DNA of 62,942 bases, filler included, from Ministeria vibrans ATCC 50519 (GCA_943704425.1; 5 parts of 5 records of this genome joined end to end with filler, not necessarily neighbours in it); one strand, 5' to 3'. Shown: positions 1 through 16,610, numbered from the whole stretch's first letter. Notes: generated by a model from the letters alone, not told the origin. Numbers and translations are program-made.

Positions 1-109
<109 letters not shown>

Positions 110-131
110 TTTACTTTTTGGGTGTTTGTAG

Positions 132-268
132 CGCTCTCTCAATCATCGCACAGTGGAATGTACACTGGCGGACAGTCGACTACCTGGCGCGAACCAAACG
201 TAGCCCATGATCCCGCCCTTGACATGCGTCTTAATGCCATTGCCGTCGACAACGCAACGGATGTATAG
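132..268 (+). CDS. Terminal exon of an upstream gene of unknown product (LSQSSHSGMYTGG...DNATDV*)
   Basis: Acceptor tttgtag at 131, open frame to TAG at 266-268, then AT-rich 3' sequence. Confidence 0.55.
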
Positions 269-334
269 AATCAATTTCAACTATTATTATTATAATTCAT
301 AACGAAGGAATAAAGGAAGCAAAAAGTTGTGTTT

Positions 335-2073
335 TTATTTCTTGCCCCATCCGCCCCAAAAGGAAAGCACATTGCCAAGAATGCCTGTCTTCTCCACACG
401 GTGCTCCACACTCGGCAGTTCCACATGATTCAGTGCCAAATCTGGAAAAAAAAAGAAAAAAAAAAGGAGGAAAAAAGGAACAAAGATAAGTAAATTAATA
501 TTAAATGCGTCGCTCAAGATTCAGTTCTTACCGAACAGCAATGGCTTTGCGTTGACGGGAACAAAGGCAGGTGGGAAGGCAATGAGGGAAGAATCATTAA
601 GATTGAGATTGGGTGGGTAGTCGTCAAGGGCCTCGGCGAGGGCTCGCGAAGGCCCATCGGCCACTGAGACAGCCGACGACACACCCGCCATGGCCGCCTC
701 AATCTCGCACCCAATCTAAATCAAAAAAAAAGAAGACAGTGTAAATGAGGGTCAAATAAATGTATTATAGATTGTGTGTGTTACCTTGGAGGAGCGAGCG
801 CCGTTTGCGACGGTGACCAGAGCAGTGCGTTCACGGGCAATGAGCGCCGGATCGCCACAGTCGTCGCACGCCGCAATGGCCTCAGCCGCATATGTCGCCG
901 TGCGGTCAAACAGCGAAAAGGCCTCAGTGAACTTTTGCGTGTCGGCAAACACCTCGGCGACATAGAGACAGCGGAAGGCCTTGAAGGTCGCCTCCTTGGC
1001 GGCGGCAAGCGCAATCTGCGCCCCAACCAGATGGCGCGTGTCGACTCGGTCGGCCGACAGCGACAGCGACTCGAGTTCGAGACGCAACGAGTGTGCACAC
1101 TGCATCAATGTGTCGTACAGCTTCACAAGTGCCTCGGGACGCACGCTCCCGTCGGGTGTCTCGGTCGCATGCGCTGCAGTCGCCTCACCACCATTTCCGT
1201 CCTTCTTGCCAGTCCGCTGTGCCTTCTGTGCCGCCTTGAGAGCTGTCCACGCCGACGCAAGCGACTCGGCCAAGTGCACATCGCGGTTCATGGTCTCAGT
1301 GTAACGCATGCACGTCGCATACGACACAAGCTCATTCAGCAGTCCCAGTGCCTTCCCCTTGTCCGCCACGCCAGTGCTCTATTAAAGCACAAAAAAAAAA
1401 TCAATATCACTTCCGCTACACGTGTCTCTTGCATACGGAATCGAGCGAGCGGCGCTCCTCCTTGACCGTCTGCAGCAGCTCCACAACAGCGGCAATGAGA
1501 TTGTCGCGCTCCGTCGCTTGCGCCGTCACGACCACTGCCGTCGTGGCGGCGGTCGTCTCACTCCCTTCATGTGCGACCACTTCGCCTCGCAACTCATTGA
1601 CCTTCACCAGTGCCATGCGCGTTTGCGCACTCCGGATGGGAATCTCACGGCCAATGTGCGTCACACTGCAAATACACAATGAGCGTGTGACAGTACAGGT
1701 GCGTGTGTTGTTACCTTGTCAGTGACTGTGCTTCGCGGGCGTGCGCCTCACGGAAGACCGACTCCAATTTGGTACTGAGCATCTCCAGCACTTGAGAAGA
1801 AGCCGCCCTGAACAAAACAAAATGAGTGCAAACTGCAAAAATGTGAACCTTTCATACTTTTGGCGCATTTCCAGGAGCTCCTTGACATCGCCCTTGCGAC
1901 TGAGCTTGTGAGCACAAAACTTGATGGACGGCTCAATGTCGGACAGACGCGCGTCATACGCATCGCGCACCCCTGCAGAGCCCGCCAGCGTGTCCAAGAG
2001 CGCCTTGGCCCGCTGGAAGTGCTCGAGCGCTTCTTTAAATCGGTCGTGGTCAAACGCCATTGTCCCTTGCATC
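335..2073 (-). CDS. SRP68: Signal recognition particle subunit SRP68, 3' exons
   Basis: Spliced peptides MQGTMAFDHDRFKEALEHFQRAK...IEPSIKFCAHKL, EATFKAFRCLYVAEVF...FTEAFSLFDR and C-terminal DLALNHVELPSVEHRVEKTGILGNVLSFWG match SRP68 motifs. Confidence 0.88.
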
Positions 2074-2084
2074 CTATTGTGTGT

Positions 2085-2088
<4 letters not shown>

Positions 2089-2174
<86 letters not shown>
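2089..2174. repeat. (GA)n microsatellite, left boundary of the block nested in SRP68
   Basis: About 40 GA units. Confidence 0.95.
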
Positions 2175-2177
<3 letters not shown>

Positions 2178-2214
2178 GCTGACGGCCAGACCAGTGACGT
2201 GATTGGATTCTTCG

Positions 2215-3259
2215 TCATACATTGCGAAGTCGCTTGGACTGCGCATGTGAGTCTGCGTCGTCACAGTCCCGACTTCGCTTTGCCCCAAGCACCATATCGG
2301 CCCCCTCATTGGCCAGTCTGTCGGCCATGGCATTTCCCTCTGAGCTCGAGTGGCCTTTGACCCACTCAAAGGTGGTGGAGTGCCCTGCGCGTGTGCGAGC
2401 CGTCATGGCGGCGTCCACTCTGCGCCACAGGTCTTGATTCGCCACGTCGCCCTGGTCTGCCCGCTTGAACCCCCTATTTTTCCAATTTTGAAGCCATTCT
2501 GTCGCCTATCATACAAGATGTAAGCAACGAAACCTATGACCATGGTGTTCCCTTACTCCTTTGACGACGTATGAGGAGTCGCAGTAGATTTTAGCGTCGC
2601 CTAGCGAAGGCGTCTCCATAGCTGCAATGATGCCCATGAGCTCGCCACGGCCATTGGTCATGCGTCCCGTCGGTACTGGCCCGGCTGCATTGCGCGCGTC
2701 ACCATGCCCAAAAAACACTCCGTAGCCAGCACGACGGTCGCTCGCGGGACCCTTGCAACTCCCATCCACATACACTGTCTGCTGCCCACCGCTTGCTGCT
2801 GCGCCGCCGCACTGTGGCGCTGTCCGCGTTGACCCGCTTCGAGAGGCGCTGCTGCGTTCGTGGCGCGCTCGGTCGTAGTCCGCAATGGCGAACGTGCGCG
2901 ACTGTGTCTGCGTCTCACACAAAGCGGACGCTTGAGACACAGACGGGCGTGGGGGCGGGCGGGGTCGAGGGGGCCCCCGGGCGGCGCACGGCAGCGGTTG
3001 CAGTCCATCTGACGATGCGCGGCACCCCACAAACGCCTCGGCGGCTGCACGGGTCGGGAAGCTCTTGAATCTAGCCCCCGGATACCCATGGACTTGGTCG
3101 CTGCACTCTTCCCTACAAACATCGACGAGGTCACATTCTGAACGTTCTTTTTTCACTTCCCTTATTCCCTAATCCAGCACCTTACCATGTCTGAAACACC
3201 CCTGTCAAGCGCCCATTTGCGACAGCGTAAAACTTTAGTTCTTTGCGGCTGCGGCCCAT
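2215..3259 (-). CDS. RNASEH1: Ribonuclease H1 (hybrid-binding domain + catalytic domain), 3 exons
   Basis: MGRSRKELKFYAVANGRLTGVFQTW/EECSDQVHGYPGARFKSF (HBD); VYVDGSC, TNGRGEL, IYCDSSYVVKG, NQDLW, WVKGH..GNAMADRLA give the D-E-D-D catalytic residues. Confidence 0.93.
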
Positions 3260-3502
3260 TGCAAGGAGAGCAGAGGAAATGATGACTGAAGGTCTAAATC
3301 ACTCTAAAGTCTAAACTCTAAAGTATTCGGAGCGAAAACTGAAATGAAAACGGAAAAGGAAAGTGAAAGTAGTGAACGACTGAAACTGTGAAACTGTCTG
3401 AAAGTAGTGAAGCTTTTTTTTTCGTTTTTCACACTCAGTCTGTCTCAGTGATCAGTTGTTCAGTAATCAGTCGACACTCGACAGTCGAACACACCTTTTG
3501 AG

Positions 3503-5862
3503 ATGATCACATGGCAGCTGGTTGCTGTTGTGCTGTGGCAACTGATTGCTGTTGCAAGCACTGTGGAGGCGGTTCCTATTCCGGCAGACTGGCAGAAGCG
3601 CGTCAACGAAGCCAAGATGATATTTTCTGCTTCGCCCGCCGATCCCGGCTACGCGCCATACGTTGGCAACGGGTATGTGGCGGCTGGACTTGATCTAGAC
3701 ACGTGTTACATGGCTGGCGTCTTCAATGGATATCGCAATGGTACAAAAGTGAGATAGAGAGTCAACAATGAATTAACATCAACAACAGTGACTCCCTCAC
3801 ACCGCGCCGCAATCCCGTCGCCAATGCGAGTCAGAATTCAGGGGCCTCCGTCAACTCCCATTGGTGGAGCCTTGGATGTAGAGCGCGCTATTTATTTCAA
3901 CAGATCGCGTTTGCACGACGGAAGGTTTGTTTGTTTGACAGTTGTGCAATCACAGTAATTCACACACACACACATTTTGTATCTCTATCTCGCTCCAGCG
4001 TCATTGAACAGCGGTGGTATGCGCATCAGACGAAACGATCGGTACTCGTGTACGAGGTGGGGGTGCTTGAGTTCGGCTCGGCCACTGAGGTGACGCTGCA
4101 AATGGATGCGACGCTGCCGCTGAACAACACCAGCACCAACGGGGACTTTACTCCGTCGCACAACGTGACCCACCAGTATGACAATGTGTACGTGTGGCAG
4201 GGCACGACACGAGAGGCAGAGACTGCGCAGAGCACCTCGCGGACGGTCGCCATGGCGTTCCAGGCGGTACCCTCACAAGTACTTCTGACGCGCAGTCTGA
4301 ACAACACGCGCTTTCTCAATGTGTTCTTCTCGGACCTTGACTCGAGTGCACCCGACAAAGACGCCTTAGCACTTCTTGCGCTACTTGCCTCGGTGTCTTC
4401 GGAGGCGCTTGTCGAGTCACACGAGCAGGCGTGGCGTATGTTGCACGACGAAGGTGGCATCGACTTGGTCGCCGCCAACGTCACCATTGCATCCACGGTG
4501 AACAGTTCGCTCTACTATCTGTATTCGTCTGCTCGCGCCGACTGGCCCTACGGTCTGAGTCCGTGCGGCCTGTCGGGGCCCAACTCGTGCTACCACTCAC
4601 ATTCATTCTGGGACACGGAGACATGGATGTACCCAAACTTTTTGCTGCTTCGTCCCTCGGTAAGCCCGTCGCTGCTCGAATACCGTGCGCGCCGTGTCGA
4701 CGAAGCCAAGGAGCGGGCACGTGTACGGGGCTGGGAAGGTGCCAACTGGCCGTGGGAATCAGCGTTTACGGGTGTGGACACAGTTGTTGCGCCCAATATT
4801 GAAGGGAAATACGAGCAGCACATTTCGGGCGACATTGTGCGTGCCTTTGCGCAGCAGTGGTACGCGACAGGTGATCGTCACTGGCTCAATCATACTGCCT
4901 GGCCTGTCATCGAGCCCACGTGTGCGTTTCTGGCGTGTCGCATGCAGCGCACAGAGCCCAGCAGTGTCGTCGATGCAGATGGGGATGGCGCAGCGTGTGG
5001 CGTCAAGACGGGCACTGGCAACTACACCATCCTCGATGTGCAGCCGCCCGACGAGCGTGCGGGCCTGGTCAATTCGTCGTGCTACACCAACGCCGTGGCT
5101 GCGAGCGCCTTGCTTTTCTGCGTGCGTGCCGGTGCGCTGCTGGACCGCCCTGTGCCAGCGCAGTGGACACATCTGGCGCGCAACGTGTACTTGCCCCTTT
5201 CGGCAACGCTGTGGCCGGGCCGCCTGGTCCATCCTGAGTACGCCGGCTATGCGGGCCAGCAGATCAACCAAGCGGACGTGACACTGCTGCAGTACCCGCT
5301 GCAGTGGCCCGTCCAGGCCGACATTGCGCACAACGATCTGTTGTACTACACTGCGCACACGGATCCCAACGGCTTTTTCACGGGCGACTCCGCCTACAGC
5401 ATTGCCTGGCTTGCCCTCGGCAACCGCACCGCCGCCGACACACAGTTTGCCAATGCCTTTGCGCACATGGACCTTGCTCACTTCAACGTGTGGCGCGAGC
5501 GCGCGCACACGGATGGCAAGCTCAACTTTATCACGGGCGCTGGAGGCTACCTGCAGAACTTTGTCTATGGCTATGCGGGCGTGCGGGTCACTGCCGACGC
5601 TCTGCGTGTGTCACCTACGCCCGTGCTCCCACCACAGACGACACGTGTCACTTTGCGTCTCAGCTACCTCACGCGTTCCATTGTGCTCACGTACGACACG
5701 GACAAGTGCTGTGTCGCCCTGCGGCCCCCCTCCTCCCATGCCCCCTCGTCCCTCCTTCCACTGCGTCTCGTCCAGGAGCAATCGCACCAGTCGTCGACCA
5801 TTTCCCTCTCTCCCGTGTGCTTTTTGTTGCCGCAGAGCTTTCACATTGAGCCCATCGCTTAA
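3503..5862 (+). CDS. Secreted glycoside hydrolase family 65 (acid trehalase-like / PGGHG-like)
   Basis: Signal peptide; VGNGYV, GLSPCGL, YHSHSFWDTETWMYP, WPWESAFTG, EQHISGDI, PPDE, INQADVTLLQYPL and NFITGAGGYLQ motifs; two short introns near the 5' end. Confidence 0.88.
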
Positions 5863-6007
5863 TCAGTCGTTTTTCATTGACGTACTCTTCATTGTATCAT
5901 ATTTTCTTGAACTCTTCGCAAACTTCTTTTCACTTCATTAATCAGAAGTCGGTTTCAACAAGGCACTCGTTTATGTATCAAACAAAAAGGGCTTCATTGT
6001 AACATGT

Positions 6008-6876
6008 TTACTTCTTGTTCTTTTGGATGAGCTGCGGCGGCAAAGACTGCTGGAGCTTCTCGGCCTTGGCCTTGTCGTCAAGCTACACAACAACAACAGT
6101 CAACACACACACACTTGTCTCTTTTTCTTTCTCCGCGCACTATCTCACACACATACTCTCTCTCTCTCTCCCTCTCTTTCGACATACCTTGAGTGTGTAC
6201 AGGTAGCGGCTGCAGCGAACCTTGAACTTGTACTTGTCCTTGGACTTACGCTTGTCCTTGGCCTTGCCAACACTGTTCTTGGCCTTAGCCTTCATGATCT
6301 GACACACACACACAAAAAGAAGAAAAAAAAATCAAAACATACACATCAAGAGCAGCAGCAGCAGAAACCATGCACGCACACGTCTTGACAACACAAAAGC
6401 AAAATGGTTTGTACCAAAAACCGTACAGAATCAAAGGCGCATCACATCACACACGCTCACTCACTCACACAAAAACCCACCTCACAACCAAACAAAAAGC
6501 ACACGTACACACATACACACATACATGCAATGAACTGCAAAGCCGACACAACTCACATGTACAACGACACACACACACACACACACACAAACGAACACAC
6601 TTGTGCTTTCCCTTTACCTTGACAAATTTGGCATCCTTGCTGTGTGCTCGCTGCAGGAATTCTTTGATCTCCTTCACCTCCTTCGGCTACGCGGGGAAAC
6701 AAAGGGGATGGACAGGGGGCAAGAGAGAGCCAGAGAGAGAGGGAGAGAGAGAGGAAAAGGGTAACGATGAAAAAAAAAAAAAAAAAAAGAAGAAGAAGAG
6801 GTAAAGAAGCAGAGACACGTGTCAGCGGAGGAGGCATAGACCTGGCTGAGACAACGCCAGTGTACATGCTTACCAT
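6008..6876 (-). CDS. RPL38: 60S ribosomal protein eL38, 4 coding exons (the first is ATG only)
   Basis: M/PKEVKEIKEFLQRAHSKDAKFVK/IMKAK...KFKVRCSRYLYTLK/LDDKAKAEKLQQSLPPQLIQKNKK*; GT-AG introns keep the frame. Confidence 0.93.
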
Positions 6877-6910
6877 GATGTTCTGCTTCTATGTTTCTGG
6901 AGTAAACCTG

Positions 6911-6947
<37 letters not shown>

Positions 6948-7597
6948 TGAGAATCGTGTGAACCATATAAATGACCAATACGGTCATCGGCCAGGGGCAA
7001 TGGCGACTAGACAAACCCAGAGAGGCCCCTCGCGCGAGGGGAATGGGCCTCAAACGCGCGTCGTGTGTTAGAAAAGGTCTTCGAAAACACAAATCGCCTC
7101 TGCACAACCCCGCTCGCGCGCTCTCTCAACGCCACGACACACACACATACACACACGCATCCTTAAGCATACCTGACAGAAGAAGTCAAAAAAAAAAGAT
7201 CGCTTTGAAGTCAATGAATTGTATTGTACATTCATCAATGACTTGCGTCTCCGCTCTCCTCCTGCGCTCCCTTCCGTGGCTTTTCGCACCCCCCACCCAC
7301 TCAGCCGTCACTACCTACTCATCGGGATGTCCTCGATAGCTAGGAATTGAACTTCATGACGGTCCAATTTTTCACCAAATTTTCCCGAAGCTTTTTTCAA
7401 AAGACCTTTTCGCCAAAAAAAATCCCATAATCCCATTTCATTTCTCTTCTTTCCGCCCCCAATAACCGGACGATAGTGCTTATAAACTATTAGTGCTACG
7501 ACAAGTGCGAATAAGCGTCGAGAAATATTTTATTTTTGCGTCTCAAAACTGTTTGTCGTCACCTTACTTCTTCCAGACATAGTCGACAGCGAGCGCC

Positions 7598-10500
7598 ATG
7601 GAGAACGTGCCAATCGTCACAGTCGATGCGCCTGCTGTTATTCGACCCCGTCGCTCGTCGACAAGCTCGCTGCTGTCCGATCGAGCTGGTACGGTCACCG
7701 GTTCGGTGTCCTCTTCGTCGCACGTCGAGCGTCCCTCACTCGACTCGCTCGCATGCGTATCGCCCTGGCGCAGCTCCGAAAATCTTACTGGGTCACCTAC
7801 ACACGCGCTAAGGGGAAAGCGGGAGTCTAGCCAGGCCTTCATCGACTCTTTCTCGTCGACGCACTCGTCAGTGCTGCCTCCCAACTCTATTTCGAGTCAG
7901 AACACCACCAACGATGGTGGAAGCGATCCGGCCGTTACCTTTCACCGTCTTTCACGTCTTGCTCGCTCTCTCACACACGAGTCGTCCGAACCCGAAGTGC
8001 CCGACAGCGCCTGTGCCATCTATGGACCGGGCACCGTCATGTCGGCGGAACACTCGCACCACAACCGCTCGGGTCCTCCCTGCGCCTGGGCCGACTTTGT
8101 CGAGCTTGCGCCTCGCGATACATCCAATTCTGGCGAAGAATATGCTGCTTTGCGTGCCATTGCCATTTTTGTATTCAGCGCCGCCTCTCAGAGCACTCTG
8201 TGTCCTCTCAAAGATCGCTGGCATCGCCTCCAAAAATACTCCCGCACCTGCACTGGCAAGGACCTCGTCAACTTGTTGGTCGTGTCAGGCGCGACCTGGA
8301 ATCGCGCCGAAGCCATCCACCTCACCATGGCTCTGCTAAATGCCTCGCTTCTCGGTCGCTGCGGCGGTGGCTCAAAGACCTTCAAAGACTCCTCCAGCAG
8401 TCTCTACCGTTTCACCTCCAGCAGTGTCGGACCTCGTCTCTCCAAACGTTCAAAATCCCACCGGTCCACCTCGAATGACCTCCTTGGCCTACATAATGGG
8501 TCGACAAGTGGGGGTGGGGCTGGGGGTGGCGGAGGTGGCGGTGCTGGTAGTGGTGTTGGCGGCACAGCTGCCTCTGCCACTGCGGCCGGTGGTGGTGGTA
8601 GTGGCCCAAGCACCAATGCTGCTGCCAGTGCCAGTGGTGGCTCCGGCAACGGCAGTGGCACGGGAAGCGGAATACGGCTTGCAGCCAGCGTGTCAATCAG
8701 CGCCATGAGCGATGGTGTTGGTGGTCCTGGCAGTGGCGCTGGTGGCAACTCTATGGGCGGCGGTGGAAGCGGCGATGATGATCGTGATGACGAAGGGGGA
8801 GGGACCGTCGACGACTCGGAAGACGAGGACGCCAATACCCCGCTGGTGGTGGACGCATCTGACGTAGTCACCCTTTCGCCTCACCTGCCCAGTCCTTCGA
8901 GTCGCTACAACAAACGGTCGCGTCGTCGACCCACCACCACCCATGAGAGTCCCATCACATCCACCAACCCCACAACTGTCTCAAGCACTCTCTTGGGTCT
9001 GCTGTCACCTCAATCGCTCAACAAGAACCGCGTCGCATCACCCTCGTCGTCCAGCTCCCAGGTCAACGCTGTCGCCGACATGAGCAAGTGGGAGTTTACG
9101 CTCCGTCTCATGTCAGGCGCCAAGGGTACGGCCAACTCGTCGTCGACTGACTTGGTATCATCTGATCAGCCCGACAGCAGCGACACGCCCACTGCGCCTG
9201 CGTCATCACAGCACGCAACTAAAACGTCCGTGATCTCACCTGCCGCTCCGGGAGTCTCCAGCACTGCCGCTATCACTCAGGCATCACGCACTGGCAGCAT
9301 CGTCAGCGAGAGCACGAGCTCCTCCTCTACCCCTAACAGCTCGATAGTGTTGCCGCGGCTGCGCCACTTTGGTGGTGCGAGTTTGCTGCTCACGAGCGAC
9401 ATGGACCTGCTACTTCCCAATGTGGTTTTGGATAATGCCAAAGCCGTTGTGAATCGCCGTCGTGCCCTGTCACTCACTGATGTGAGCTCTCCAGACGATA
9501 GCGCGACGACCATCACTTCTGCTGTGCCCTCCACGATCGCCCCGCACGACCCCGACGAAGTCTACTGGCAGGCGGACCCCGTTGCTAGTGGCATTGACCA
9601 GCTTCGGGAATGGGGCGTCTGTGTCAGCGATGGCTTTGTGCTCGAACACCTTGGTTCCGCCCACCTGCTCTACCGTCGTCACTTCTACGCTCGTGATCAT
9701 GCTGTCTTTTTCGCCGATGATGCCAATGGCGACCCGTGTGTGCTTACCGTGCGCGTCAGTGCCTCTCATGCCGATCGTTTTCTCATCATCCTACGCCATG
9801 CAGACGAAACGGTCAGCGTCACCGCCTCGCGCGACCTCCTCACCGTCGTCAACACCGAGCTCAAGCTCATCCGTGGCCGTGCCATCACTGCCTCCGGCAC
9901 TACCCTCAACCGTCGCTCTGCCATCACTGGAAGTAATAGCCACACTCCTGTTGCCTCTCCTCCTTCTACCTCTCTCAGCGCTGCCTCGTCGCGTGCAACT
10001 TCGCGTGCCACTTCGCCCAACAACAACGGCAAGAATGCCAAACACAAAAACTCCAACAACTCCAACGACAGCAATGCGGACAATGTGTCGCCTTCCTCCC
10101 AGCTGCAATCGGTCACCCGCGTGCGCTCCTTGCTCACCACCCCTTCCAACACAATGCCTGTGCTGTCCCTCGGCGGTCTCTCCGACAAGTCGCCGCCCAG
10201 TCCCCTGCCGAGTGCCCACAGTCAAGACAAGCTGCTGATAACGCTGTCGCCTCCCCCACAACATGGTCGCGCAACATCCCACGAACCGCCTTCCCTCCAG
10301 CTACAATCCCAACCCCGCCCTCACCACCACTACCAACAGCAACAGCAACAACAACAACAACTACAACATAATCATCATCGCCATCAAATCCAACCTCCAC
10401 ACGACTCCTGTCCCGTTTCTGACGATCCCGACTTTGACGAGCGTCTCTCGCTCGAGCACCCTCGTGCTCTGGTCACGGCTGCTCTCCACCTGACTGCCCC

Positions 10501-12190
10501 TCAACTCAACGTGCCCAAGATGCACCAATGCCCGAGCACTGCCGTTATGGACCAATTGCTTGAATTTGACGAAATGTCTCTTTCCCGCACCTACAAATTC
10601 GGTGTCATCTACGTTGGCAAGGGCCAGACAACCGAACGCGAGTGGCTCACCAACAAGCACCACTCGTCCACCTTTGACGACTTCCTTCACATGCTAGGCT
10701 CGCGTGTCTCCCTTGACTCCTTCAAGGGCTACCAGGGCGGCCTCCTCTCCACTGACGGCCCTTCGTCTGTCTACACCCGCTTTTGCCAGCGTGAGATCAT
10801 GTTCCACGTTAGTACGCTTCTCCCATTTGATCCCAACGATACTCAACAGGTCAGTTTGTTTTTATTTGTTTTTACTGGGTATTTTTACTTCTTGTCACCC
10901 GTTTTTGTTCTCTCTCACTCTACATTACTTGTTTCTTTCCTCTCTCTCTATCATTTTGTTTCTCTATCGCTTTGATTCTCTATCACTGTGATTCTCTATC
11001 ACTTTTTTTCTTTCTCCTTCCTCCCTCCTTCCTCCCTTCTTCCTCCCTCCTCTCTCTCTCTCTATCACTTTGTTTCTTTCTCCCTCCTTTCTCTCTCTCT
11101 CTATCACTTTGTTTCTTTCTCCCTCCTTTCTCTCTGTCTCTCTCGTCTTCTCATTTTTGTTTCCGCTTGATAGATCAACCGCAAGCGGCACATTGGCAAC
11201 GACGTGGTGTGCTTTGTGTATCTGGAGGACGACACGCCTTTCTCGCCGACCGAGGTGCGCTCCGGCTTTATCCACGCGTACATTGTCATCCGTGCCTTTC
11301 CGCAGTCGTCGGGCTCCCCTGCTCGCTACACGGTGACCACTCTGCGCCGCAACACGGTACCGCCGTCGGGCCCAGTTGCGCCCAAGACTGAATTTGACCA
11401 TGGTCAGTCGCTGCGCAACTACCTGCTGACCAAGGCCATCAATATGGAGCACGCCAGTCACATGTCCGTCAAGCTCAGTGAGCTCAAGACCCGTCGTCGT
11501 CGCCTTCTCTTGCGCATGCTCCTGCGTGGCTTCTCCTCCGCACGTCTCTCCACCGCCGAAATCCATCCGCTCTCGCAGAGCCCGTATTCTGCCAAAAACG
11601 TCGACTCGAGCCCCGTCAGTCCCTCGACTGGCAAGAAAAGGGTCACCCTCATGGACGCAACTACCTCTTCGCTCTCTGTCTCCCACAGCCAACTCAACAT
11701 TTCCCAATCACCCTCGCACGTTGACGCTGTTCGCCAGCAGCCTTTGAATGGCAAGGGCACTTCACCATGGAGCAGTGGCACTTCCATTCACCAAGTAGGT
11801 CGCCAGGGATCGCGCTCTTCTTCGGGCTTCACCTTGACCAGCGCCTCGAACATACCGTTGGATTCGATCGATCCCACTTTGCTCAAACCATCGGTGTCGC
11901 TTGATGCACTCGCCTCGGTTGGGGACACTTCTACTTCTGTTTCTACTTCTGTCCCACCACGTCGCATCACCATTGCGAATGTATCGTCGAGTTCCATCGA
12001 GGTCGAGACGTCCTCCGAGAACACAGATGACACAAATGGCGGCGAATCTGTCGTCAACGTCGCTACTCTCCTCACCCTGCCTTCCCCTGACCTTGTGCGC
12101 ATCATTCTTGACTTGCGGCAACAGGTGTGCAGGCTGAAACAGTCTCTATGTGAGCTCGAAGCAGCGAGCAATACATCAGACAGTCTGGTG

Positions 12191-12193
<3 letters not shown>
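7598..12193 (+). CDS. DEP-domain + RapGAP-domain protein with C-terminal coiled coil (paralog 1); intron 10850-11173
   Basis: DEP: LKDRWHRLQKYSRTCTGKDLV...FKDSSSSLYRF. RapGAP: YRRHFY, YKFGVIY, FDDFLHMLG, EIMFHVSTLLP, RKRHIGNDVV (Asn thumb), LLTKAINME. Confidence 0.9.

Positions 12194-12219
<26 letters not shown>
12192..12219. repeat. (GA)n microsatellite, right boundary of the nested block; starts inside the RapGAP TAG stop
   Basis: gtg tagagagag... run of about 14 units. Confidence 0.9.
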
Positions 12220-12221
<2 letters not shown>

Positions 12222-12252
12222 AATGATGACAAGATGGCACTTGCTATGGTAC

Positions 12253-12724
12253 CAAGCAGAGTAGGCAATGGCTTCGGCGACTGTTCGCTCCGACACACTC
12301 ACGCGCACCTCGGGCTTCTTCTCCTCCTCAAACGTCACGGTTGCCGCTGTTGTCGTCGTAGACGGACCGGCTTCTCCCGCGTCGCCAGTGTCATCATCAC
12401 CTGTCGCCGACGTTTCGCCTTCTGCCACGGTGGCTGTCTCGGGCTCGACCTGCTTCACACTCTCCTCTTCGCTGTTGGTCACCGACAACTTCTCACACAA
12501 CTCAACAAGTTGCTTCGAGTATGCGGCAGCCTAACATTAAAACAGCGTTACGAAACGAGACACACGACTGTTTTCAATGCAACCTTGCGCAAGCGCGACA
12601 GCGAATGGTGTCTCCTGCGCGGATGATCTTCGCTCTCCAGACGCAGCGCCATCGCATAGCTGTACGCTCGCTCCGCTTGCCACAGAAGATAATGCAGCTC
12701 ACGAGACTCGCCAATCATCTCAGG
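12253..12724 (-). CDS. SRP68: SRP68, internal exons of the RNA-binding domain (12584-12724 and 12253-12530)
   Basis: ELHYLLWQAERAYSYAMALRLESEDHPRRRHHSLSRLRK/AAAYSKQLVELCE...ERTVAEAIAYSA(W) matches the SRP68 AERAWSYAM...HLLSRLRKA...EAQAY region. Confidence 0.88.
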
Positions 12725-12871
12725 CTATGAAAAGATAAACACGTCAATAAAACAACGTTTCTCTCTGACTCTCTCTGTCAACCTCACTTCTCATTGACTC
12801 ATCCATGAACTTGAACTTCAATTCTAAAATAATTATTATTGTAATTTTGTTGTTGTTGTTGATTTTTGTAG

Positions 12872-14215
12872 ATTGCTGAAGTTGCTGTGCGAGCGGCAGC
12901 CGAGTCTATTTCGAGTTTGTTTAGCGAAGCGGAATTGGACCAGCTGGAGCGAGAGAAGCGGGAGCATGCGCTGGGCCACGCGGCGAGCATGAAGGCGGCC
13001 AAGCGAGCCATGCGTAACTCGGTGCGCGAGAGTTCGCAGCTGCTGGGTGTCAAACCTGAGGAGTTGGGCATTAACGATAGCATTTTGGAGGAGGCCGATG
13101 ACGACTCGGCGCCACCCCCGCTCGAGGACGACGACGATGACGATGAAGTGATTGCAACGGTGCCGGCCGAGGAAGAGTCCGACACAGTTGGCACTCTGAC
13201 ACCGTCGACCAGCTCGTTGCTCTCCGCTGGCGTCACTTCGACCGGCTCAATGACCAATGTCATCGATGCGAGTACTCCGTCGCGCTCTGACTCGCCCGCT
13301 GCCGCTGCTCCGCCTCCACGAGCGCCAACAGCGCGAACGCCTCGTCCTCCTCCGCCTCCAGCTCCTGGCATGCCTCCGTCGCGTGCCACCATGTACGGTA
13401 TTGGCACATCCGACGTGGCCGACGCGGCCATTCCGCCCGTACCCAGCCGTCCTAAGCGTCCCATCTCGTCGCTGTTGCGTCAAAACGTCCTCGACTTGGA
13501 GCCCACTTCCGACAGTCTTTCTTCTATTGTTGGCGAAGACAGCGTGCTCGACGAGAGCAGCATGACGAACGGCGATGGTGCTGGTAATGATGATGATGAT
13601 GACGACGCGCCTCCACCGCCCCCGCCAGTGCGTGGTCGCTCCACGTCAGTGCGACAGGTCTCCGAAGAGACCGAGGGAGGCGCTCCGTCGGGCCCACCAC
13701 CTGTGCTCCCACCAACGACACGCCGCGGCAACTCACGCGTGATGCAACTCAACGAAGAGGAGGGACGCAGCTCTTCACGTCCCGACGGAAATCTTCCGCC
13801 ACGTCCTCCCAAGCGAGTTCAATCGTGTTCGTCGTCGGATATGGCACTGCGCCAAGCCGCCATGCAAGCGTCAAGGGCAGTTGCAGCCGAGAATGCAGCA
13901 GCAGCATCTGCAGCAGCGTCCACGTCGCCACCCGCCGACGAACCCTCACGACCCACGCCGCCCCCGATTGCACCACGATTGTCGAACACGTCTTTGAGTC
14001 TGACCGGGATCGAGCCGTCAACTTCAACACCGCCCACGACACCCGGTGGCACCCCCAAACCCAAGAAGACGCCGCCCAACCCACCGCCGAAGCCGACTGC
14101 GCGCGCCTTCAGCGTCAAGGTCCCCATCAAACCCACCGAACCCAACGCGCGCCCCAATGTACCGCCCAGGCGGACACCCCAGAAGATGCCCCCCACGGAT
14201 GCGTCGGAGATTTGA
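12872..14215 (+). CDS. Terminal exon of an unknown gene: short helical segment, then an acidic and proline-rich tail with many PxxP motifs; 5' exons not found
   Basis: Acceptor tttgtag at 12871; about 447 open codons with coding-like composition. Confidence 0.7.
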   Translation: MAEVAVRAAAESISSLFSEAELDQLEREKREHALGHAASMKAAKRAMRNSVRESSQLLGVKPEELGINDSILEEADDDSAPPPLEDDDDDDEVIATVPAEEESDTVGTLTPSTSSLLSAGVTSTGSMTNVIDASTPSRSDSPAAAAPPPRAPTARTPRPPPPPAPGMPPSRATMYGIGTSDVADAAIPPVPSRPKRPISSLLRQNVLDLEPTSDSLSSIVGEDSVLDESSMTNGDGAGNDDDDDDAPPPPPPVRGRSTSVRQVSEETEGGAPSGPPPVLPPTTRRGNSRVMQLNEEEGRSSSRPDGNLPPRPPKRVQSCSSSDMALRQAAMQASRAVAAENAAAASAAASTSPPADEPSRPTPPPIAPRLSNTSLSLTGIEPSTSTPPTTPGGTPKPKKTPPNPPPKPTARAFSVKVPIKPTEPNARPNVPPRRTPQKMPPTDASEI

Positions 14216-14520
14216 ACCCAAGGCAGAGAGAGAGAGAGAGTTTGAAAGTTTGAGAGAGAGTTCGAGTTTGAGTTTGAGTTTGAGAGAGAGAGATAGAGAG
14301 AGAAGCAAAGAGGGAGACGAATTTTCCAAAGAAATAAAGAAGTAACCACATTTTATCCGAATAACAAGAATAATTATAATAATAATAAGTTAATAATAAT
14401 AATAATAATAATAAGATAATAATAATAATAATAGTATTACTATTATTATTATTATTATTCAGAGCTGTTTCAGTTTTTTTTTGTAAGTTTTGAAAAACAA
14501 GTACAATAAAAAATCACTGT

Positions 14521-16535
14521 TCATTTCTGATTTGCAGCGTCGTCGTTAAACTCATGCTGCTGTCGCCACATATCAGCATAGCGACCGTTGCGCGCTAGCA
14601 GCTCAAAGTGGCGTCCGCGCTCCACAATGCGTCCACTGTCCATCACGAAGATCTCGTCACAATCAACCACAGTACTCAAACGATGTGCAATCATGAGAGT
14701 GGTGCGTCCTTGCGAGATCTATTGGGTGCAAACGTGAGTAAGTGAATTTGTGGTGTGGAAGAATTGTTTTACTTTGCGAAGTGCTTGAAGAATGTTGGAC
14801 TCGGTTTGAGAGTCGAGACTCGACGTTGCCTCGTCGCACAGAAGAATCTACAAGAAAGACATTGAGACAAAGCAAAGCGCGGCTGAACAAAAAAGAGCAA
14901 GAGAAAAGCGTACCGAAGGGTTCTTGAGGACAGCGCGGGCAATCTTGTTCGAGAGAGAATAAAAAGATCGAGCGTTAGTAAAATAAGAGTGGCGATGCGG
15001 GTGTGATCAACTTACGGCGATGCGTTGCTTCTCGCCACCCGACACTTTAAGACCACGCTCGCCCACGAGGGTGTTGTAGCCGTTGGGCATGCGGAGAATG
15101 ACGTCGTGGATGTCGGCGATGCGGGCGGCGGCAAAGACGTCGTCGTCGGATGCGCCAATGCGACCGTAGCGGATGTTGTACATGATGGTCTCATTGAAGA
15201 GCATAGTGTCCTGCGGGATGACGCCGATGTGAGCGCGCAGCGACTCGACGGGTGCTGACTGAATGTCGCGGTTGTCAATGGTGATGCGGCCCTCGAGCGG
15301 GTCGTAGAAGCGGTAGAGGAGACGCAACAGCGTTGACTTGCCACAGCCCGAGGGCCCGACGACGGCGACGCGCGAGCCACTGGCGATAGCTAGGTCCAGC
15401 TGCTTGACAACGGTGTGACCGTCGGTGTAGCCAAAAGCAACGTCGTGGAAAACAATGGGCGCGCCCATGGCTGGCAGGGCAAGAGGCGGGGCGTCCGGGG
15501 GCGACACGATGGAGCTGTTGACGGCAAGAAGGCCGAACATGGCGTGCATGTCGATGAGCGACTGACGCACTTCACGGTACACGGTGCCAAGAAAGTTAAG
15601 TGGGAAGCTTAGCTGAAAGAGCAGACCATTGACCATGACCAGATCGCCGACGCTCATGGTCCCAGCGGCAATTTCGCGCGACGCCAGCACCATGATGCCC
15701 GCCAGTGACAGCGAGAACACCGCAGACTGGCCCCAGTTGAGGGCGGCAAGACTGTAGGTAGTGCGCAGTGTTGCACCCTCAAACTCAGCCAGTTTCTAAT
15801 TGAGAGTGAGTGAGAGTCGAGTCGATACAATGAAGAGTGTAGTCACCTCGTCGTAGCGCGCTGTCTCGAAGCGTTCGTTTCCAAAGTACTTGACTGTCTC
15901 GTAGTTGAGGAGCGAGTCGAGTGCGCGCGCACCCGCCGCATTGTCAGCCTTGTTCATTTCGGTGCGGATCTTGATGCGCCACTGCGTCACAGCAAGCGTA
16001 AAGACCGAGTAGGCAGCGACACAACCGACCGTCACCAATGCGTAGATGGACCCAAACTGGTAAGAGAGAATGCCGCTCACGAGCGACAGCTCAAAGATGG
16101 TCGGCACAATGTTGAAGATCATCGAGTTGAGCACAAAATTGATTCCGCTGCATACCGTGGCGTAGAGATATATACAAAAAAAAATAATAATAAAGCAAAG
16201 TAAATTTTTGTGCAACTTGAGGGTATAGCTAGCTCTGATTTTACCGTCCACCGCGATCAATTGCTTTGGAGAGGGCGCCTGTCTGGCGGTTCAGATGGAA
16301 GGGCAGGTCGAGTTGGTGGAGGTGGTAGAAGGTACGCCGAGAGAGTGAGCGGATGCCTGTCTGGGCGACCTTGGCAAAGACGACAGTGCGAAGTTCTTGG
16401 AAGAGCGACGAGCCAAGGCGAGCGGCGCCGTAGCCCACAAGAATGGCAAAGGCAGCCGCAGACACGGCCGCAATGTTCTCTTCGGTGATCGGCACATTGA
16501 GTGTATCCACAGCATACTTGAAGAGGATGGGAACC
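14521..16535 (-). CDS. ABCB7: Mitochondrial ABC half-transporter ABCB7/ATM1; 5' end lost at gap
   Basis: [50 protein letters not shown], Walker [10 protein letters not shown], signature VSGGEKQR, Walker [18 protein letters not shown]. Confidence 0.95.
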
Positions 16536-16610
16536 TAGAGGCAAGAGGGATGACACTGACGGCGGCGGCATGGACAGGATGGTCTTCTTGGTAGTCTTCG
16601 ATGTGCGCTG

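Follow-up and report, generated by a model that had tools for sequence, protein, structure and literature searches.

A four-gene block separates exons 5 and 6 of SRP68 in the draft genome assembly of Ministeria vibrans ATCC 50519 (GCA_943704425.1). Judged from the sequence, this 10.2-kb block is probably the product of an assembly or scaffolding misjoin at (GA)n tracts (a probability of roughly 0.8) and most likely does not truly lie inside a SRP68 intron. We favor a misjoin because essential single-copy genes and domains of this assembly are cut at intronic microsatellites or homopolymers, with their partners found elsewhere or left dangling. An earlier note on this DNA had offered two readings, a repeat-induced misassembly, which it considered at least as likely, and the real, microsatellite-mediated insertion of a four-gene circle. 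Displaced SRP68 exons 1-3 and sibling cases elsewhere in the assembly favor the former, while the latter finds no support.

The DNA analyzed (the window; 62,942 nucleotides, filler included) is eukaryotic, with a GC content of 54% and short introns of ~50-90 nt, and its positions 1-16610 correspond to the entire scaffold C1783. The only N run in the window follows position 16610, and neither junction of the block contains N. The assembly is a draft of 29.7 Mb in 2860 scaffolds with small N gaps, which measure 6-10 nt on other scaffolds.

SRP68 exons 5 and 6 are contiguous across the block

SRP68 is encoded on the minus strand, with exons 4-11 in the window (Table 1; exon coordinates are approximate). 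Searches were run exon by exon, using the Pfam profile, solved chains and six-frame translations of the organism's own assembly. Exon-wise matches to PF16969 (curated cut-off 26.1 bits) extend over its N-terminal RNA-binding and C-terminal parts, at profile positions 1-41, 42-93, 128-304 and 310-558, with scores of 78 and 54 bits for the strongest pieces. Each part of the profile was found once in the six-frame search of the assembly, indicating a single-copy gene in three pieces: positions 1-41 on scaffold C2844, 42-93 at 12584-12724 and 128-558 at 533-2075. The last of these pieces, at 1-2084, is short and terminal and has simple repeats at both its ends.

These exons resemble canonical SRP68 (PF16969; solved mammalian chains such as 6frk_u and 4p3e_C) in that the profile regions occur once each, in the correct order and phase, and in that their alignments fall on chain residues 18-53, 60-104 and 136-208 as well as on the C-terminal part. 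They differ in a ~55-residue acidic, Thr-rich insert in exon 5 that has no counterpart in the solved chains, and because of this insert exon 5 alone yields no scored match to Pfam or PDB.

Exon 5 ends at 12253 with ...AEAIAYSA-TG and is followed on the minus strand by GTACCA from 12252. The acceptor AATAG ends at 2074 and exon 6 opens with G at 2073, giving TG+G, a tryptophan codon, and then MQGTMAF. As assembled, SRP68 intron 5 therefore runs from 2074 to 12252 (10,179 nt) with donor and acceptor intact and in phase. Residue 2 of exon 6 aligns to residue 137 of solved mammalian SRP68 chains, and the chain segment QAYTAYLSGMLRF (130-142) corresponds to AIAYSAW/MQGTMAF with zero residues missing, a match made by eye rather than a scored alignment. 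On this comparison exons 5 and 6 appear to encode adjacent residues, with no exon missing at 12253/2073. Because order, strand, phase and residue-level contiguity all agree at this junction, the fit is far more than chance. The tryptophan codon and the chain alignment thus bear out a previous proposal that the two ends join in phase as contiguous SRP68.

Table 1 Features of scaffold C1783 around the interrupted SRP68 gene (window positions)
Feature	Position	Strand	Remarks
(TAA)36	1-109		scaffold start
SRP68 exons 6-11 and stop	1858-2073, 1715-1807, 1437-1665, 785-1378, 532-715, 335-441	-	Pfam positions 128-558
Acceptor stub, SRP68 intron 5	2074-2084	-	ACTCACACACAATAG/G, tract edge included
(GA)45, (TC)45 in SRP68 sense	2085-2174		left boundary of block
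RNase H1	2215-3259	-	Cauli_VI N-terminal domain and RNase_H
GH65 glycoside hydrolase, PGGHG-like	3503-5862	+	signal-peptide-like N-terminus
RPL38 (ribosomal protein L38)	6008-6876	-	several short exons
DEP/Rap-GAP gene	7598-12193	+	exon 1 7598-10849, intron 10850-11173, exon 2 11174-12193
(AG)14, (TC)14 in SRP68 sense	12192-12219		right boundary of block
Donor stub, SRP68 intron 5	12220-12252	-	GTACCATAGCAAGTGCCATCTTGTCATCATTAAC
SRP68 exon 5	12253-12530	-	conserved ends flanking ~55-residue acidic insert
SRP68 exon 4	12584-12724	-	Pfam PF16969 positions 42-93; chain residues 60-104
J3	12725-12871		147 nt, 31% GC; expected site of SRP68 exons 1-3
Proline-rich open frame	12872-14215	+	opens exactly at acceptor-like TTTTTGTAG; first in-frame ATG 40 codons in

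The block carries four genes and is bounded by GA tracts

The description of a 10,179-nt intron holding four genes between (GA)n tracts agrees with our coordinates and gene calls, as does the placement of two of these genes, RNase H1 and RPL38, on the host strand. All four genes look complete from their sequences. The RNase H1 stop codon is 40 nt from the GA tract and 142 nt from exon 6, and at the opposite end the Rap-GAP stop codon TAG passes directly into the AG tract. The single Rap-GAP intron contains a CT-rich minisatellite. A complete gene thus has its 3' end at either edge of the block, and the tract has the same orientation at both edges. That the two ends fit each other as a convergent pair had been taken to indicate a circular intermediate, but this is a weak argument since any two 3' ends fit in this way. 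Nothing was found in support of such a circle, and when the whole scaffold was searched as DNA against the organism's genome, the matches were confined to simple repeats and CT satellite, with neither a second nor a permuted copy of the block among them.

Cutting the block out at its tracts leaves 33 nt, (TC)n and 11 nt, and what remains is, as had been noted, an ordinary intron comprising a donor, a branch-like TTAAC, a pyrimidine-rich (TC)n and an AG. TTAAC resembles a branch point and is found in the donor stub just before the pyrimidine tract, which is the normal order for a short intron and for this genome; CTAAC-type branch sites are visible at other introns of the assembly.

The same arrangement could represent a real nested-gene intron, in which the four-gene block was inserted in the (TC)n of intron 5 with duplication of the tract, perhaps when GA tracts recombined or an excised circle integrated, and SRP68 is cis-spliced across 10.2 kb. 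Nested genes are common in introns of Drosophila, and an intron of human NF1 contains OMG, EVI2A and EVI2B. Like these, the block presents complete genes on both strands between two in-phase host exons; its sequence is continuous and free of N, the donor and acceptor are intact and phase matched, the tract stands in the same sense at the two gene 3' ends, and the 28-nt (AG)14 tract would normally be spanned by reads. Unlike typical host introns, however, intron 5 would be more than 100 times the length of the other introns of this gene, which are ~50-90 nt in the window, would hold four genes, two of them on the host strand, and would be bounded by its own microsatellite. SRP68 transcription would be terminated inside such an intron by the two genes on its strand, RPL38 among them, which bring their own 3' ends, and the only good branch-like motif (TTAAC) would be 10 kb from the acceptor. 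The first SRP68 exons are, moreover, on another scaffold, so that the upstream exons are not in cis as assembled, and the sibling cases described below show truncated domains and N gaps. We therefore consider a nested-gene intron unlikely, and all other real events taken together similarly so. If the insertion did exist, an intron of 10 kb with four genes, sitting in an essential gene of a compact genome whose introns measure 50-90 nt, would be a striking instance of microsatellite-mediated gene-block mobility combined with long-range splicing.

SRP68 exons 1-3 are displaced to another scaffold

Exons 1-3 of SRP68 are absent from C1783 and are found instead on scaffold C2844, and for this reason SRP68 as assembled cannot be cis-spliced, however intron 5 is interpreted, and one or more of the joins around the gene must be wrong. 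Exon 3 (LKYGDYTAYRAYLTRRLRTIRHATPVLLHGKKKFQKRAIQ), at C2844:18444-18566(-), matches Pfam positions 1-39 (1-41 in the six-frame search) and residues 18-53 of the solved chains. Between exon 3, which extends to residue 53, and exon 4, which begins at residue 60, the six intervening residues are accounted for and no exon is missing.

On C2844, A37 and (CA)12 come after the exon 3 donor GTTGG and lead to the acceptor of an exon that belongs to a huge calcium-binding-EGF repeat gene. This EGF-repeat gene is split by a 2.8-kb unit that consists of SRP68 exons 1-3 and, on the other strand, a caspase/NB-ARC gene. The EGF exon on the other side of the unit ends ...NIDE/GTACC and is followed by A15 and an 8-nt N gap. 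The SRP68 5' unit thus occupies an EGF-gene intron with a poly(A) tract on each side, and beside one of these tracts is an N gap.

The site at which exons 1-3 would be expected, J3, contains no long repeat and only T5, and the two acceptors that border it, that of exon 4 on the minus strand and that of the plus-strand exon at 12872, stand back to back. The proline-rich frame that opens at 12872 probably stands here without its upstream exon or exons; searches returned neither a Pfam family nor a paralogue for it. One hypothesis is that the caspase/NB-ARC gene of C2844 continues into the 12872 exon, in which case moving the 2.8-kb unit to J3 would mend three genes. The phases of the two fit (0/0), and no family or paralogue evidence linking them was found.

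Pieces of one gene at separate loci, each with a canonical donor or acceptor end and with matching phases, and with exons 1-3 on another scaffold, could also be explained if each SRP68 piece were transcribed on its own and the RNAs were then joined by trans-splicing. The HSP90 and dynein heavy chain genes of Giardia are split and trans-spliced in this way, their intron halves pairing over long complementary stretches. SRP68 shares with them the separate loci and the splice sites at which each piece ends or starts, but its intron halves lack extended complementarity: the longest stretch of exact complementarity measures 7 nt in both intron 3 and intron 5, against a mean of 8.6 nt in random windows, and a duplex energy z of -3 rests on A-rich and U-rich low complexity. 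There is also no promoter space 5' of exon 6, given the RNase H1 stop codon close by, and one of the partner scaffolds in the sibling cases, C1031, simply ends inside a repeat. Trans-splicing of SRP68 is for these reasons highly improbable. Its variant by intron pairing was rejected, as intron-half complementarity is below that of random windows.

Other genes are interrupted at simple repeats

Simple repeats are frequent in introns and 3' flanks of the M. vibrans genome. A DNA search of the assembly placed (GA)n tracts like those at the block ends on dozens of scaffolds, several scaffolds start within GA or CT-satellite arrays, and the breakpoints of the block thus coincide with low-complexity repeats common to many loci. 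The assembly is nevertheless not chaotic, because most conserved genes that we checked are collinear, including one V-ATPase a paralogue, Ufd2, AlaRS, ~10 chaperonin genes and several class-I tRNA synthetases. Among ~22 conserved genes inspected, three are affected: SRP68, one V-ATPase a paralogue and one IleRS-type gene. The splits in another two synthetase pieces are ordinary breaks, at points where tiny contigs end.

In the affected V-ATPase a paralogue, on C2457, profile positions 14-688 are followed by positions 704-815 placed 4.9 kb away. A 4.5-kb block intervenes between (AG)52+N9+G9 and (AG)47, and the V-ATPase exons flanking it are in phase. At the end of this block is a BBE exon with profile positions 1-29 of 45 and a donor, its last exon being absent. 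The IleRS-type gene has its 5' half at the end of C1031, which stops inside (GA)n, and its 3' half internal to C1728, behind (GA)n(TA)7. Across this tract on C1728, head-to-head with the IleRS-type 3' half, is the Tudor-knot exon of a MYST-type gene, with only profile positions 32-53 of 55. The missing N-terminal half of this Tudor-knot is too short for a search to pick up.

A living cell is unlikely to tolerate such cuts. As read from the exon and domain profiles, the single-copy, mostly essential genes (SRP68, the IleRS-type gene, the MYST-type acetyltransferase) and the single domains (BBE and Tudor-knot) cut in this way show the pattern that chimeric chaining of contigs through common simple repeats would yield. 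The SRP68 intron 5 block has the anatomy of these sibling cases, and we therefore assign the same cause to it. In each of the three insertion-like cases (SRP68 intron 5, C2844 and C2457), the piece past the block reaches a scaffold end within 2-9 kb. The N8 and N9 gaps of C2844 and C2457 flank the sibling blocks, with the gap on the donor side and a gap-free join on the acceptor side in both.

A two-step misjoin may account for the block

In the organism, intron 5 would be short, running from the donor GTACCA through TTAAC and a (TC)n pyrimidine tract to CACACAATAG. Contigs of the draft would end or be chained at simple repeats, some of them to the wrong partner. The RNase H1-GH65-RPL38-RapGAP unit, itself bounded by GA tracts, may have been joined through the shared tract to one half of the SRP68 intron, and the other half then attached at the free end, with the GA stubs merged so that no gap is visible. 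We envision two steps, the first producing a chimeric contig of the block and the acceptor half and the second one in which the scaffolder hangs the true partner on the end. Such a process would fit the pattern of scaffold ends and gap sides described above.

The anomalous junctions are like known repeat-induced chimeras and scaffold misjoins in falling at (GA)n, (AG)n and poly(A) tracts, in the presence of scaffolds that start or end in the same repeats, in the N gaps beside two sibling junctions and in the gene and domain halves left dangling. They are unlike them in that the usual chimera is one-way, whereas here, in each of the three insertion-like cases, the path comes back 2.8-10 kb later to the intron that it left, an unusual signature; hanging the partner on the end would require a scaffolder that tolerates a large negative gap. 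Further points against a misjoin are that neither window junction contains N and that (AG)14 can be spanned by most reads, a false join there requiring a small k or weak read threading. Nor does simple repeat collapse explain the loss of exons 1-3 from J3, as it would leave a long T run rather than T5.

Some of these features would be expected of a real structural variant, present in one haplotype or in part of the culture, with an intact allele keeping the cell alive and a collapsed assembly reporting the rearranged path. Excision and reinsertion mediated by simple repeats would have placed the four-gene block in intron 5 and moved the unit with exons 1-3 from J3 into the EGF-gene intron. J3 does resemble a clean empty site with only T5, whereas A37 and A15 stand on either side of the displaced unit, a combination that k-mer collapse explains poorly, and the insertion-like cases all return to the host intron. 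Against this, none of the unique parts of the window has a second allele in the assembly, N gaps occur at the junctions, and several independent events would be needed around SRP68, with more at the IleRS-type, V-ATPase and MYST-type genes; we regard such a variant as very unlikely.

More generally, gene blocks of this organism might truly move in and out of microsatellite or homopolymer tracts, for instance as excised circles that recombine at a (GA)n or poly(A) tract, although this too we consider quite unlikely. It would leave essential genes, SRP68 among them, with giant gene-filled introns, or with pieces rescued by an intact allele or by trans-splicing.

With misjoining as the preferred reading, intronic tracts of (GA)n, (AG)n and poly(A) seem to be sites of chimeric joins in the draft. 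The value of this observation is a practical warning: gene models, synteny and calls of nested or split genes drawn from the draft need read-level checks.

Searches beyond the assembly

Outside the assembly, the unique donor flank had no match in a metagenome scan, an exact-protein look-up of the RapGAP exon returned no match, and a word search with the open reading frame crossing the (AG)14 junction likewise returned none. The RapGAP search identified only distant SIPA1L-like proteins, whose identity did not exceed 40% over 12% of the query. The RapGAP and GH65 of the window resemble animal SIPA1L and PGGHG proteins only distantly.

Displaced exons of SRP68 and other genes

SRP68 exons 2-3 lie not on the main SRP68 scaffold (CALSCP010001783.1) but on a different one, C2844, where they are followed by GTTGG-A37-(CA)12 and then by an EGF-repeat exon. 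The SRP68 exons and a caspase/NB-ARC gene make up a unit of 2.8 kb, by which a giant EGF-repeat gene is divided, and an N8 gap (C2844:21124-21131) adjoins this unit. The proline-rich frame of the window, which matched no Pfam family and had no paralogue in the M. vibrans genome, is a candidate for the 3' exon that the caspase/NB-ARC gene lacks on C2844; the phases fit.

Two further genes are broken up in the same assembly. On C2457, a block of 4.5 kb separates two parts of a V-ATPase a-subunit gene. This block lies between (AG)52+N9+G9, in which the poly-G run immediately follows the N gap, and (AG)47. At its end stands a BBE exon (profile positions 1-29 of 45), the last BBE exon being missing. 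An IleRS-type gene is found in two halves, the 5' half at the end of C1031, a scaffold that stops inside (GA)n, and the 3' half on C1728, behind (GA)n(TA)7 and head-to-head with a MYST-type exon that encodes only positions 32-53 of the Tudor-knot; the site of this junction is at about 2380-2500 of slice L020 (C1728:9500-18500). The scaffold end at 16610 cuts the ATM1/ABCB7-like transporter gene mid-exon, and no repeat was found at that end.

Features of the window and of other scaffolds (L004, slice of C2844; L018, slice of C2457)
Feature	Position	Strand	Remark
CT-rich minisatellite, 39-nt unit, TCTCTATCACTT motif	window 10904-11163		inside RapGAP intron
SRP68 exons 2-3	C2844:18447-18566; L004:1504-1623, 1697-1810	-	Pfam positions 1-39
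Proline-rich open frame, 447 codons	window 12872-14215	+	start exactly at acceptor-like site
ATM1/ABCB7-like half ABC transporter (ABC_membrane + ABC_tran)	window 14521-16610	-
Simple-repeat tracts at V-ATPase a-subunit gene	L018 (C2457:137400-147000) 1329-1423 and 5960-6063

Repeats, introns and the SRP68 insert

The RapGAP-intron minisatellite recurs at well over 100 places in the genome (74-95% identity), its copies often adjoining (GA)n arrays and lying at scaffold ends, and a similar array occupies an EGF-gene intron on C2844.

Introns of the window, L004, L018 and L019 (the C1031 end) are about 50-90 nt long, often start with GTAC(C/G)A or GTAAG/GTATG, and often have a microsatellite as their pyrimidine tract. 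In many of them a branch motif of yeast-like type, (A/T)CTAAC, is present 15-35 nt upstream of the AG.

In SRP68 exon 5 (window 12300-12460, minus strand), two conserved helices of the RNA-binding domain are separated by an insert of about 55 aa that is acidic and rich in Thr. Solved mammalian SRP68 lacks this insert.
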